Below, piece by piece: positions 31,342 through 61,462 of a stretch of DNA of 64,000 bases. Position numbers and translations under genes: made by a program. Under the pieces are notes generated by a model. It was not told where the DNA came from. It did not search any database and saw only the letters and a program-made list of their open reading frames with translations. How positions within the stretch are numbered: the first letter of the stretch is position 1; every line of letters begins with the position of its first letter. The stretch comes from Octopus sinensis (Eukaryota): NCBI RefSeq assembly GCF_006345805.1, contig NC_042998.1:104656001-104720000 (forward strand). The letters are read 5' to 3'.

Positions 31342-31464
31342 CATAAAATTCATCTTTCCAGCCATATCTACCATCTGATTTCTTCGTGCAAATTCGAGTA
31401 TGACAGGGTCTTGATCCGTTAACTCTCGAACCAGGGGCATAACATGTACGAGAGTGAAGACATC
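31342..31464 (-). CDS. host-gene exon, 4-Cys module: GCLHSRTCYAPGSRVNGSRPCHTRICTKKSDGRYGWKDEFY(G)
   Basis: Acceptor ttgtaacttctag|GA, donor ATG|gtatgt, 123 bp, phase 1-1, open frame. Confidence 0.85.
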
Positions 31465-32911
31465 CTAGAAGTTACAAAGACAAATATGTATTTATAGTTG
31501 CACATTCATACGCAGACACACACACACACACACACACACACACACAACACACAACACACACACACACACACATACACACACACACACACACACACACACA
31601 CACACCACACACACACACACACACACATATATATGTATATATGTATACTCCACCAAAGTTGACTGAGCCCTTTATTATTTCGAGGTCAATAAAATAAGTA
31701 CTAGTTAACAACAGAGCTCAATATATTCGACCTAAATCTCGTTCTAAAATTTCAAACCAATATACATTATATATATGTGGTGAGGACTAATGGCCTAGCA
31801 GTCATAACATCATGATTTCAGTTCCTAGATCACATGATGCGTAGTGCTCTTAAGTAAAACACTTCATTTCACGTTGCTCCGCATCCGCCTCGACGCCTGA
31901 TACGCGGTACATCGTGTACCTGTTCAGGCAACATCGAGTTTGAAGAGGTGAGAGATAAAGTGGTAAAGAGAAAAAGAGGTAGAGGAAGAAAAATAAAGGA
32001 AAGAGATAGAGGGAAAGGGAGAGAGACAGAGAGTGTGTGTGTGTGTGTAAGAGTGATCGAACTGGTTATCTGAATTTGTAAGCGTGATCGAACTGGATAT
32101 CTGAATATGTAAAAACATATTTTGATAATTCAAAGTTGCACTGAAAGTTAACTCATCACTTGCTGGTTGTCATATTCAAATATGCAGCAATCGATACACG
32201 TACACATTCATTAGCTGACACAGACACACAGTGTGCATGCATACATCCTGACGCCACCGTATGCACACATACACATATACACTCAGTTGTTCGTGAAGGT
32301 CAACCACAGAGAAAACTTCTCTTTCTGTCTGTCCGTCGGTCTGTCTCTTTCACCTTCTCTTTCTTTGTATATATGTATATATTGACGTGTGTTTGTGTGT
32401 GTACGTATGTGAGCGTGCATAGGACACCTATGATGAGCAGTCATATAATAAACAACATTCTTTTACAATGGAATATAGAAAAGAATGTTTAATGATATAA
32501 AAAGCTGAGCAACTGCCAGTTCCCGTTCTGATTTTCAATTATTAAATAAAATAGTCCTCCTTCTTTCCAGATGTCACTCCCTAAATCAACAAGAGACGGA
32601 GAGAAAGAGTTTGAGAGAAAAAAATGTGGAGGATGAAAGAAGGATAGATAGATAATAGAGAGAGAGAGAGAGAGAGAGAGAGAAAGAGGGGAGAGAAATA
32701 GAGAGGGAATACAGAGAAGTGATACATACAGAGAGACAGAATGAGGCAGACAGAATAAGGGGTAGTGAGAGAGGGAGAGAGAAAGAGAGAGAGAGATGGA
32801 ATACAGAGAAGTGATACATACAGAGACAGAATGAGGCAGACAGAAAAAGAAGGGGTTGTGAGAGAGAGAGAGAGAGAAAGAGAGAGATTGTAAAATAATA
32901 TTCTAACATAC

Positions 32912-33034
32912 CAATAGATTCATCTTTCCATTCATATCTACCATCTGGTTTCTTCATGCAAATTCGAGTATAACAGGGTCTTGATCCTTCAACTCTCGAA
33001 CCAGCGCGATAACATGCATGAGAGAGACGACATC
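32912..33034 (-). CDS. host-gene exon, 4-Cys module: GCRLSHACYRAGSRVEGSRPCYTRICMKKPDGRYEWKDESI(G)
   Basis: ttctag|GA ... TTG|gtatgt, 123 bp, phase 1-1. Confidence 0.85.
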
Positions 33035-33535
33035 CTAGAAGTTACAAAGACAAATATGTATTTATAGATAGATAGATAGATAGATAGACAGAGAGAGAGA
33101 GAGAGAGAGTACATCAATGTTTACAAAATAAGGACATAAAAAAGAGTTCAATATATCATGATTTACTAAAAAATTGCTTCTAATTAATATTAATTAGGTT
33201 AGCTTCTATACCGAAAGTCGGAATTCATTTAAGAACAAGATGGAGGGGAGAGATAATAACATAATTGGGAATTTATATAATTATGTGAGTTAGAACTTCT
33301 CATTGAAGTAATATAGTGAAGTTAAGGTTTATATGATAAAATGCAATATTTGCTATTAAAAAATATTAAAAATATAGTTTGTTATTAATATAATTAAAGA
33401 AAAAGTTTGATAAACAAATTAACAAGAAGTTAAAATACGATTCATATTCCTAATTATATTAGGAATATGAAAGAGAGATGGGGTAGTGAGAGAGGAAGAC
33501 AGAGAGAGACGGTGTAAAGTAATATTTTAACATAC

Positions 33536-33634
33536 CAGTATATTTCTTTTTCCAGATATATCTACCATATTGTGTCCTAATGCAGGTTCCATCAAAACAT
33601 TTCTTACTAATTGTCGAGCCAACACCATAGAATT
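33536..33634 (-). CDS. degenerate or variant module exon: (E)FYGVGSTISKKCFDGTCIRTQYGRYIWKKKYT(G)
   Basis: Donor CTG|gtatgt as in the paralogues. Retains YxxGS, C-x4-C and GRY.W. Weak acceptor tcttttctaaaag, 99 bp, open frame; first two Cys absent. Confidence 0.45.
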
Positions 33635-33829
33635 CTTTTAGAAAAGATTACATTCGTGTTTTTTCATTTACATTTACTTAAGATAAAAATACTTATTATG
33701 CTCCTTCTGATGTCAATGTCCCGGTATAATTACAGGAACTTTGATGGTGCTTTAAAATCGAATAAGGGGAAAATGGGAAATCAATATTCGTATCTAGTTA
33801 GGCCATGTGTACCACACATGTCCACCACA

Positions 33830-58867: not shown

Positions 58868-60029
58868 TAAAATTTTAAAATTATGTCATTTTAAGGAAAG
58901 GAAAAAAATTTTTCCAATATTCTCCAGACATTTTGACACAAATATATATATTTTTAAACATTTAAGCCTTCTGTCGTTTTTTCACACTTTACTATTTTCT
59001 TATATATATATATATTATATATATATATATATGTATGTATGTATGTATGTATGTATGTATGTATGTATGTATGTATGTATGTATGTATGTATACGATAAG
59101 ATAAAATTGTTGCCTCTTATTATGGAGACAAAAGGGTTTATAAGACTGCAAAAAAGAAGTGCTCAAAAGAAATCGAGACAAAGATAAAAAAAAACATTGA
59201 TTAGACAACAAACATCAAATTCGAGTCAACGACTTTATATAACACCACGCTTCCATACATTTGACCATATATAAATATTACCATCGCCTTTAACATATAA
59301 CGAATACATATATAAAAACACAGAAAGTAAAATTATATATGCTATTAAAAATACAAATATATAGAACGTCCTATCAAGAAGGTGTATACAATAGACTAAA
59401 AATTCTAAAGCGTGTCATGCGAATAAAAATCTAATTAAAATAAAATATCAATCGACTAAAAAATGTTCTTACTCCCCTCAATTAGAAATGTATTAAAAAA
59501 TTTTATTTCATAAAACCAATGTAGGTTGGAGTCCAGGAGCGTAAAAAAGTTCCACAAAAAATCAAGTCAAGCACATTTATGGATACTTCGGGAGTTAACT
59601 GCCGCTGTTCGATTACGAGTTAAGGTGCATCTCGAGAATGACCCCCCACCTCATCAGGATGAACAGGAATTTCAATAATTAGTCGTCCGACAAATTGTGA
59701 ACGACTTATATGTATAGCCTTTCCGGAAATGAAGGACATATACATCTGTGTTCGTTTGTGTTTCCTTTCTTTTATGTTTTACTTAAATTTGTGGGGAATT
59801 TATGTATGCATGCGGTGTGTCTAGGGATACAATATGTGTGGGAGTTTATATTGGGGATGTTGGAAAAAAGACTATTGAGTAGTTGTCCTCTTTACTGGGT
59901 TGTGTATGTTAGTCTATGTGTATGTGAGTGAGTTAGTCTACGTTCTGGTCGAACTCTTTGAGGGACTCCTAGGTATTGGGGGGGGGTGAAGTTGGGGGAA
60001 CAGTAATTATATTTATAATGGGGCTCACA

Positions 60030-60450
60030 GTTATGATAGAATATACCTCCTTCTATGTGGGCAAGGGTTTAAAATTCCACTTCTCCTATTCAGGTAAATG
60101 TCTAGGAATTCGCTCTTTTCTCGGTCACGCATAACCCGCACTGTCTGCTGGTATTGAAATACGCTTTACATTTTTCCGGAATTTTCCACTGTATGCTGTA
60201 CTCGATGGCGCTTTTTTCAATGACCATATGTGCTTGGCAGGGTTGTGGCGTTACGTCTCTCCAGGAGGTTATAATAACGGATTATGAAGGGTCCTTCCGT
60301 TGCTTCCACGTACTTTCGCACGTTTGGTTGCCAGTTTGGTCCACCTGCTGTTACGTATGTCTCTTGTGCAACGGTCTCTGTATTACAGTGGCCTCTGTCT
60401 CAAGTATGGGCCAACTTACTAAAATATTTTTTACATTGGGTGCACAGCTA
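60030..60450 (-). mobile_element. Penelope-like GIY-YIG fragment
   Basis: rc reads RKYVEATEGPFIIRYYN, NATTL, KHIWSLKK..IQWKI and CGLCVTEK across frameshifts. Confidence 0.75.
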
Positions 60451-61149
60451 AAGGAAATTCTCAGGGTGTGCCAATTAAATATTCTGCTGAAGCTATATGT
60501 ACATGGAAAATGCTTATCTGCGAAGTGCAAGAAAATCTCATCTTTTTGGGTTTTAACACTTAAAGAGAAGAGTGGCGCTTTCTCTTGGAGAGGATAGGTG
60601 CTAGCATATTTGATGAAGACAGAAGAAAGAACAACATACAGGTGTATTAGTTTAACGCTCTGGAAGAATGGAAAAGTCTTCGGTGTTTCCAGCCTACACT
60701 CTTCTATGTATACATTTATCAGTGTATTTATATCTGTGTATAGTATACACTTGAATATTACAAATTCAAAAATGATAATTACACAGATATTCATATGTTG
60801 CATATATTTGTGTGATTATTATTTTTGAAATTGTAATGTTCATGTGTATACTATGCACAGGCATATATTTTGAATACTATCATTCTTCGTTAAAGTATTA
60901 TCTCAAATACCTCATCTCTAATTTTGCTGGGTCACATTAACTGGTCATTTACATTTAATCATACAACCATTCATGTTTTCATGGTTTATAGATTATAGAT
61001 TACAGATATAATTTCTTCCATAGTAAAAGAGAGCTAAATATGTAGTGATAAAAAGAAATATGGTGCAGACTAAAAGACCGTGGGATTGCTCCTAGCAAGT
61101 CATCTACCGAAACACAAGTCTAGGTGAGATTTTTTTTCTGAAAATCAGC

Positions 61150-61385
61150 AGTCGCCCATGCATACAGCCTCTCCTTTCCACTCCACTGATGTTATCCAAG
61201 GGAAACGCAAAGGCCAATACAGTTTAGCGCAAGTGCTGTCGCATCTCATTTCAACAGCAAAGGGAACTGGAACAATGTGAAGTATAGTGTCTTTCTCAAG
61301 AACTTGAACACAGACCGTTCCGAGAATTGAACTCATTACCTCATGATTGTGAGCTGACGATCATACCGCTGAGTCATATGCCTTC
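61150..61385 (-). mobile_element. decayed SINE; another decayed SINE at ~61560-61735
   Basis: Similar to 30130-30260 and to 41870-41990, respectively. Confidence 0.55.
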
Positions 61386-61414
61386 ATGAAGATTAATTAT
61401 GTAAAAATACTTAC

Positions 61415-61462
61415 CAACCACCCGGTTAACACTGTTCGGTACATCACACGGTGCTTTAATCA
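61415..61462 (-). CDS. candidate upstream exon of the module gene: xIKAPCDVPNSVNRVV(G)
   Basis: ctctttatatttttgcag|TG ... TTG|gtaagt, 48 bp, phase 1-1, in unique sequence between SINEs. Linkage to the array is inferred. Confidence 0.55.

Follow-up and report, generated by a model that had tools for sequence, protein, structure and literature searches.

A probable Octopus gene of an uncharacterised family of secreted cysteine-rich proteins with tandemly amplified module exons

Introduction

Each fibronectin type I (FN1) module is encoded by one symmetric phase-1 exon, partners of these modules are bound by beta-strand addition, and the fibronectin-type-I fold is usually linked with vertebrate matrix proteins. 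The cysteines of FN1 include a late C-x-C pair and form 1-3 and 2-4 disulfides that link strands A to D and D to E. A different kind of precedent is provided by the conotoxins, snake phospholipase A2 (PLA2) and the three-finger toxins, where a secreted disulfide scaffold with invariant cysteines is combined with nonsynonymous substitution rates (dN) far above the synonymous rates (dS) and with introns that are far more conserved than the mature-peptide exons. Diversification of these toxins follows tandem duplication of whole genes. Exposed residues that are driven to change are typical of proteins that confront other organisms or gametes, such as venom and saliva components, immune recognition and antimicrobial proteins, and reproductive proteins. 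The subject of this report is a minus-strand gene in a 64,000-nucleotide stretch of Octopus sinensis DNA (RefSeq assembly GCF_006345805.1, contig NC_042998.1, forward-strand positions 104,656,001 to 104,720,000), which is referred to at its full length as the window. The window appears to hold the central part of this protein-coding gene, namely exon 2 and six module exons, and the gene is assigned with a probability of roughly 0.7 to a family, restricted to Octopus, whose members are small, basic, secreted and rich in cysteine.

The nearest relatives of the window gene are LOC106869870 of O. bimaculoides and LOC115232515 and LOC115222431 of O. sinensis. All three have in common with it a module signature, a linker exon encoding KxPC, a phase 1-1 exon layout and the intron flanks, whereas protein identity is only about 30%. 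LOC106869870 carries a single module flanked by the residues MLEYYF, compared to five in the window. The toxin families duplicate whole genes, whereas the window gene duplicates an internal exon within one gene, and nothing in the sequence results places the window protein in venom.

Exon structure of the window gene

Positions in two other genomic loci are designated L001, the O. bimaculoides LOC106869870 locus, and L002, a locus on O. vulgaris chromosome OX597815.1. The exons of the window gene are listed below in their order along the gene.

61415..61462, minus strand: exon 2, a 48 bp linker exon, phase 1-1, encoding (V)IKAPCDVPNSVNRVV(G), with one unpaired Cys
49609..49719, minus strand: module exon M1, 111 bp, encoding GCMMNGICQVYGTRIESASRCLQYICEERGNVRREVT
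45818..45940, minus strand: module exon M2, 123 bp, amplified unit (its first copy); O. vulgaris orthologue at L002 59780
41157..41279, minus strand: module exon M3, 123 bp, amplified unit; O. vulgaris orthologue at L002 64801
39533..39655, minus strand: module exon M4, 123 bp, amplified unit; O. vulgaris orthologue at L002 66477
32912..33034, minus strand: module exon M5, 123 bp, amplified unit that keeps the ancestral-type acceptor tgtaacttctag; protein identical to that at L002 77258
31342..31464, minus strand: module exon M6, 123 bp, last amplified unit within the window, ending in phase 1

The original prediction, which was made from the letters of the window, had placed seven minus-strand exons at these coordinates with these sizes and in this order, and all of this was borne out. 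It had also described the splice sites as YAG|G and G|GT. The donors are G|GT at all seven exons and the acceptors are CAG or TAG, with G as the following base in the six module exons; the description fails at the acceptor of the 48 bp exon, which begins with T. All seven exons are phase 1-1 and, when joined in the order above, yield one stop-free frame of 257 amino acids, as had been proposed. The introns between the module exons are 1.5 to 6.5 kb in length. Since M6 ends in phase 1, further coding exons must follow.

Each of the six module exons encodes the predicted pattern G-C-x5-C-x12-C-x4-C. The exact spacing C-x5-C-x12-C-x4-C was matched six times in a six-frame translation of the window, and these matches are the six exons, all on the minus strand. 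Chance matches in 200 Markov-1 simulations of the window had a mean of 0.065 and a maximum of two.

The conserved Gly32 codon produces an in-phase G|GTA 93 bp into every amplified exon (codon 31-32), for example at window positions 45848-45856 and at L002 59870, 64891, 66567, 70510 and 77348. This site within the amplified exons is a possible cryptic or alternative donor.

Orthology and neighbouring genes

The window and L002 exhibit 98-99% identity in opposite strand orientation. The window is collinear with L001, with 86-88% identity around exon 2 and M1. Both the acceptor (tttttgcag|TGA) and the donor (G|gtaagtatttttacataattaatcttc) of exon 2 are the same as those of LOC106869870 exon 2, which supports the proposal that the 48 bp exon is a real one, and exon 2 is also used in an O. 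vulgaris gene model. The orthologue of M1 is an annotated exon at L001 20975-21094. By this collinearity and the common splice sites of exon 2, the window gene is identified at the sequence level as the positional orthologue of LOC106869870.

A signal-peptide exon and a secure last exon had been reported as missing from the window, and neither was located there when the window was searched for both with regular expressions, tblastn and blastn. At the orthologous place in O. vulgaris, an intact signal-peptide exon is present at L002 42343-42403 (ATG...MWYLLLLSSLCIANAQLRPE|gtaagt, ending in phase 1). This exon projects to approximately 0.8 kb past the end of the window.

The O. vulgaris model, a fourth hit besides the three annotated relatives described below, is a hypothetical predicted protein (P0016, L002 10001-68551) that overlaps window positions 61415-61462 and 41157-41279. 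It is a chimera in which modules of an upstream paralogue are joined to the 48 bp exon of the window gene (VIKAPCDVPNSFNRV) through a donor that lies 4 nt too early. After exon 2, the model takes a 123 bp module exon out of frame and then runs on through a GAA/AAG microsatellite, which is translated as well. Two genes are thus fused and the module frame is misread, which exposes a gap in annotation.

The upstream paralogue lies head-to-tail at L002 13874-25340, beyond the high end of the window and approximately 17-30 kb upstream of the window gene, and is the orthologue of O. sinensis LOC115232515. This arrangement indicates that the family forms a tandem gene cluster. One module exon of this neighbouring paralogue, at L002 19104, is skipped in its annotated isoform X3.

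Relatives and definition of the family

An exhaustive HMMER search with a profile of the six window modules against 1.84 billion cluster representatives identified three annotated Octopus proteins. The first (P0001; XP_014771277.1 / A0A0L8HM43) is the 282-amino-acid product of O. bimaculoides LOC106869870, with an E-value of 1e-14. The other two (P0002 and P0003) are O. sinensis proteins, LOC115232515 isoform X3 of 261 amino acids and LOC115222431 isoform X2 of 240 amino acids, each with an E-value of 1e-11; P0002 was not placed on a contig. All three are annotated as "uncharacterized protein" only. Their layout consists of a signal peptide (MRYFLLL... or MRCLLLL...), a linker of approximately 20 residues containing K-x-P-C, and five or six modules. 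Window exon 2 encodes IKAPC... and aligns with this linker directly before the first module, and M1 exhibits 44% identity to the first module of each of the three proteins (tblastn E-values of about 1e-8 to 2e-9). The signal peptide found in the relatives and the intact exon in O. vulgaris agree with the proposal of a secreted multi-module protein.

The family signature G-C-x5-C-x3-G-x(6-8)-C-x4-C is present in all six window modules. Across 24 modules the residues G1, C2, C8, G12, C21 and C26 are invariant, and no other residue is. The rule of one module per exon, phase 1-1 and 111-126 bp in length, holds for the window exons and for 18 of the 18 modules in L001 and L002. Outside the modules, the linker exon encodes one Cys and each of the three homologues has an additional Cys at its C-terminus or close to it, and the total number of cysteines is even in P0001 (26) and P0003 (22). 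The linker Cys, the terminal Cys and the even totals suggest either dimerisation or a disulfide between the N- and C-terminal ends. With isoelectric points of 8.9-9.5, the mature proteins are basic. N-glycosylation sequons are few or absent: the homologues have 0-2, and the part of the protein encoded in the window has one.

The original prediction did not recognise the family, and database searches gave the same outcome. No Pfam family was matched by hmmscan of the 257-amino-acid conceptual protein at E-values up to 10, and a Pfam scan of the three homologues returned nothing relevant. The module profile, run against the sequences of the Protein Data Bank (PDB), produced a chance match only. 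In a word-indexed search of 5.8 billion proteins, the full-length family alignment returned three Octopus proteins; the concatenated window protein gave no match, a result that speaks only to the absence of near-identical entries, and the 41-column module alignment gave none in an index that requires three shared 5-mers. No paper naming or describing the family was found in the literature by accession or topic.

Four further candidates were rejected as members. P0004, from a metagenome, and P0006 matched over only 18-21 columns and lack the Cys pattern, and P0005 and P0007 contain VWC-like repeats whose kinship is at most at the superfamily level. The window gene is a new, unannotated member of this uncharacterised Octopus family and a paralogue of LOC115232515 and LOC115222431. 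Judging from the sequences recovered, the family is apparently confined to Octopus and is uncharacterised and unnamed.

Predicted fold of the modules

The AlphaFold2 model of a single module, built with 22 family modules as its alignment, has a predicted local distance difference test (pLDDT) score of 94.3 and contains five strands (residues 2-4, 7-9, 14-16, 22-28 and 34-40). The AlphaFold model of the 257-residue array (pLDDT 86.3) consists of repeats of this unit. Predicted strands 1 and 2 contain cysteines, as do the two ends of strand 4; strand 5 contains none.

Foldseek analysis of the array gave fibronectin FNI6-FNI9 as the best match (E-value 2.4e-5), along with FNI7-9 (E-value 3.3e-3, probability 1.0); the remaining array matches were beta-propellers and are without meaning. 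The first 31 columns of the module were also aligned by hhalign, with 94% probability, to the VWC-like repeats of P0005, a mucin-like protein of the annelid Owenia, and of P0007, a metagenomic eukaryotic protein. A loose likeness to FN1 and to the N-terminal half of VWC had been suggested beforehand, and both the nearest predicted fold and this profile link are in keeping with it.

The likeness to FN1 extends to the module length of about 40-45 residues, the arrangement in tandem strings and, as predictions for the window module, the two disulfides and the five-strand all-beta architecture of a hairpin and a three-strand sheet. Against FN1 (PF00039) stand the absence of a Pfam fn1 match and the spacing C-x5-C-x12-C-x4-C, which lacks the late C-x-C. 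With the second Cys in strand 2 and none in the last strand, the disulfide topology must differ from that of FN1. Common to the window module and the N-terminal subdomain of VWC (PF00093), or its C.Y.G..Y.PG...C....C repeats, is the motif GC-(F/Y)-x-G-x-x-Y-x-P-G...C-x4-C. VWC contains ten cysteines, a C-x-x-C-x-C motif, a CC pair and a second subdomain, whereas the window module contains four cysteines, has none of these features, does not match Pfam VWC and carries at position 8 an extra Cys in place of the VWC-like aromatic residue. From the models, the module is predicted to be a five-strand beta unit with two disulfides, resembling FN1 and VWC subdomain 1 (SD1) in shape and failing the defining features of both families. 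The family would thus represent a domain that is without a Pfam entry, with a predicted FN1-like fold and a different disulfide pattern.

Divergence of exons and introns

Paralogous copies were compared over each exon and 1.1 kb of the adjoining intron, and three independent contrasts were pooled.

45818 compared to 41157: exon divergence 16.3%, intron divergence 1.7%, Fisher 2e-11
Three independent contrasts pooled: exon divergence 12.2%, intron divergence 3.4%, Fisher 3e-11

Pooled exon divergence is 3.6 times intron divergence. The three contrasts contain 43.5 nonsynonymous and 1.5 synonymous changes, where about 10 synonymous changes are expected under neutrality (binomial 2e-4 to 1e-3). 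In close pairs the proportion of synonymous differences (pS) is 0-0.04, about equal to the intron divergence of 0.017-0.04, and nonsynonymous sites change approximately 10 times faster than synonymous or intron sites. The single-copy exons behave in the same way between species. M1 and its O. bimaculoides orthologue differ at a nonsynonymous proportion (pN) of 0.34 and a pS of 0.089, which is a pN/pS of 3.8, with 8-11% divergence in the flanking intron; exon 2 differs between the species by in-frame indels, with intron flanks that are nearly identical. In the aligned sequences this pattern indicates strong diversifying selection on the module exons over a conserved scaffold of Gly, Cys and aromatic residues. 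With dN far above dS on a conserved scaffold, a pseudogene evolving neutrally is ruled out, as is an open frame that arose by chance within a repeat. It is also an unusually clean case of adaptive evolution on an internal exon that has been duplicated within a gene.

Tandem duplication and module copy number

Self-comparison, alignment of the units and intron divergence define the duplicated region.

30093..46072, minus strand: tandem genomic duplicates carrying M2-M6

The basic unit of the duplicates is approximately 1.6 kb, enlarged in places by insertions, and the introns of different units are 90-97% identical. Copies of the amplified module number one in O. bimaculoides, five in the window and, in the assembly of O. 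vulgaris, six. In O. bimaculoides the copy (L001 44407) is flanked by tgtaacttctag ... gtatgttaaa, and M5 has the same flanks. The extra O. vulgaris unit spans L002 68443-72396, with its module at 70420 (GCLYSGRCHLPGSTVESLVHCQKKICTRISPGRYDWVKKNI), and was compared with window positions 37698-40091. The window lacks this unit, so that two genomes which are very close differ in their number of module copies.

One module exon with approximately 1.6 kb of intron was amplified in tandem in the O. vulgaris/sinensis lineage, probably by unequal crossing-over. After amplification, the copies diverged under strong diversifying selection at almost every residue other than the scaffold positions.

The surroundings of M1 are themselves duplicated between M2 and M3, with 94-96% identity of 41689-43047 to 48106-49171 and 49806-50070. 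Missing from the duplicate is the 634 bp stretch (49172-49805) in which M1 lies, and this difference represents either a deletion in the copy or an insertion in the original. When the 634 bp stretch was tested as a transposon insertion, terminal inverted repeats were absent and the TA junction was ambiguous; beside M1 it contains what we take by eye to be a degenerate copy of a short interspersed nuclear element (SINE). The question of insertion is immaterial for the gene, as M1 is orthologous to an annotated exon. Part of the M1-surroundings segment recurs inverted at 55204-55430.

The 3' end of the gene

In LOC106869870, the single MLEYYF-flanked module is followed by four more module exons, the last of which ends on an in-phase donor. 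P0001 ends with Q-C past this donor, so a small terminal exon probably follows. The 3' end of the window gene lies outside the window or is lost.

Proposed working of the protein

The full protein would begin with a signal peptide and continue with a short linker containing one Cys and then a string of modules of approximately 41 residues, each encoded by one phase 1-1 exon. The modules may serve as independent binding surfaces on a rigid disulfide scaffold that meet fast-changing partners. Candidate partners would be targets in prey or predators on which saliva or venom acts, microbes in an immune or antimicrobial role, and gametes or conspecific signals. A binding mode similar to the beta-strand addition of FN1 is plausible. 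The symmetry of the exons means that modules can be gained, lost or skipped without loss of frame, and the number and identity of the modules may be tuned by exon duplication and loss and by in-frame exon skipping. Taken from sequence features, the protein may act as a secreted binder at an interface of recognition or conflict. Were it found among the components of saliva or venom, mucus, haemolymph or gametes, the protein would represent a new cephalopod effector scaffold.

Evaluation of the assignment and alternative explanations

Several points weigh against the assignment of these exons to a functional gene of this family. The gene is known here from genomic DNA, and its expression in O. 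sinensis is a prediction. The only model found over these exons is the wrong-frame O. vulgaris chimera, and the searched databases hold no correct protein; in this sense the gene is hidden, as was claimed, although in O. bimaculoides the orthologue does have an annotation, as an uncharacterised protein. Protein and DNA searches of window positions 1-31341 recovered no counterpart of the last four O. bimaculoides modules or of the small terminal exon that probably follows them, so truncation of the gene is possible. With about 26 synonymous sites per exon, the sample of such sites is small. Foldseek matches of the single module to the PDB are not significant, with the MUC2 D3 assembly and F1 pairs first (E-values 0.5-2.4, TMq 0.52-0.58), the FN1 pairs having E-values of 1.3-2.4 and TMq of 0.52-0.57. 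There is also no pointer to a particular tissue, ligand or biological role.

A variant of the assignment, rather than a replacement for it, is that cassette or mutually exclusive splicing selects among the 123 bp exons, instead of one mRNA including them all, and gives rise to a repertoire of variant proteins. The module exons are symmetric and of equal length, so that any subset remains in frame, the copies are strongly diversified, and isoform X3 of the neighbouring paralogue already skips one such exon. All modules are joined in series in P0001 and P0003, however, and the introns measure 1.5-6.5 kb, so this usage seems unlikely, with perhaps a one-in-five standing. A more far-reaching and somewhat less probable form is that the amplified, selected module exons are a diversity-generating cassette, combined or skipped and varying in copy number between individuals, that yields a repertoire of secreted FN1-like binders. 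If so, it would constitute a recognition or toxin system peculiar to this lineage and based on a new family of disulfide-rich domains known only from Octopus.

The array could instead be a decaying, untranscribed duplicate, either a pseudogene or a gene without a 3' end, whose open frames are left over. The lack of 3' exons in the window, the lack of a correct protein model next to a chimeric, out-of-frame one in O. vulgaris, and the introns full of transposon fragments would all fit. Decay without constraint predicts equal divergence of exons and introns, a dN/dS of 1, stops and indels. The open frames and the AG/GT sites are kept at all seven exons in two genomes, the scaffold of four Cys, two Gly and aromatic residues stays invariant as the remaining positions vary, the 3.6-fold excess in the exons is almost entirely nonsynonymous, and the signal-peptide exon is intact in O. 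vulgaris. Decay is accordingly improbable.

Slightly less probable again is gene conversion that keeps the introns alike and creates an excess of exon divergence without positive selection. The 90-97% identity of the introns and the change in copy number do show recombination between units. However, exon pS equals intron divergence and the whole excess is nonsynonymous (43.5 to 1.5), the single-copy M1 and exon 2 also outpace their own introns between species, and conversion that spared the exons would itself need selection for diversity.

That the repeats are a transposon or satellite with accidental open frames and cysteine pattern can be dismissed for practical purposes: fragments of LINE, Helitron and mariner elements abound in the window, as do microsatellites, but the modules match no Pfam family and no transposon protein (a match of the latter kind was what the original prediction had named as refuting it), they match annotated secreted Octopus proteins with the same exon structure, and the pattern occurs six times against 0.065 expected.

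Repeats in the window

The window is AT-rich and contains many microsatellites and transposon remains, including four reverse-transcriptase (RT) fragments. One fragment of a long interspersed nuclear element (LINE) lies within the gene.

52510..54783, plus strand: LINE reverse-transcriptase fragment, RVT_1 E-value 3e-31, lying antisense within the intron that separates exon 2 from M1 and not part of the gene product

Tandem LINE reverse-transcriptase copies, 97% identical, are located at 21906-23658 and 23778-25530, and a further RT fragment at 12479-16397. A PIF1-like helicase fragment of the Helitron type is present at 17935-18525 on the plus strand (E-value 1e-21), and a fragment of the helix-turn-helix domain of a Mos1-type transposase at 4686-5042 on the minus strand (E-value 7e-8). 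Two short tandem arrays of approximately two copies each are found at 48019-48481, with a period of 225 bp and 80% matches, and at 63451-63950, with a period of 229 bp and 97% matches.

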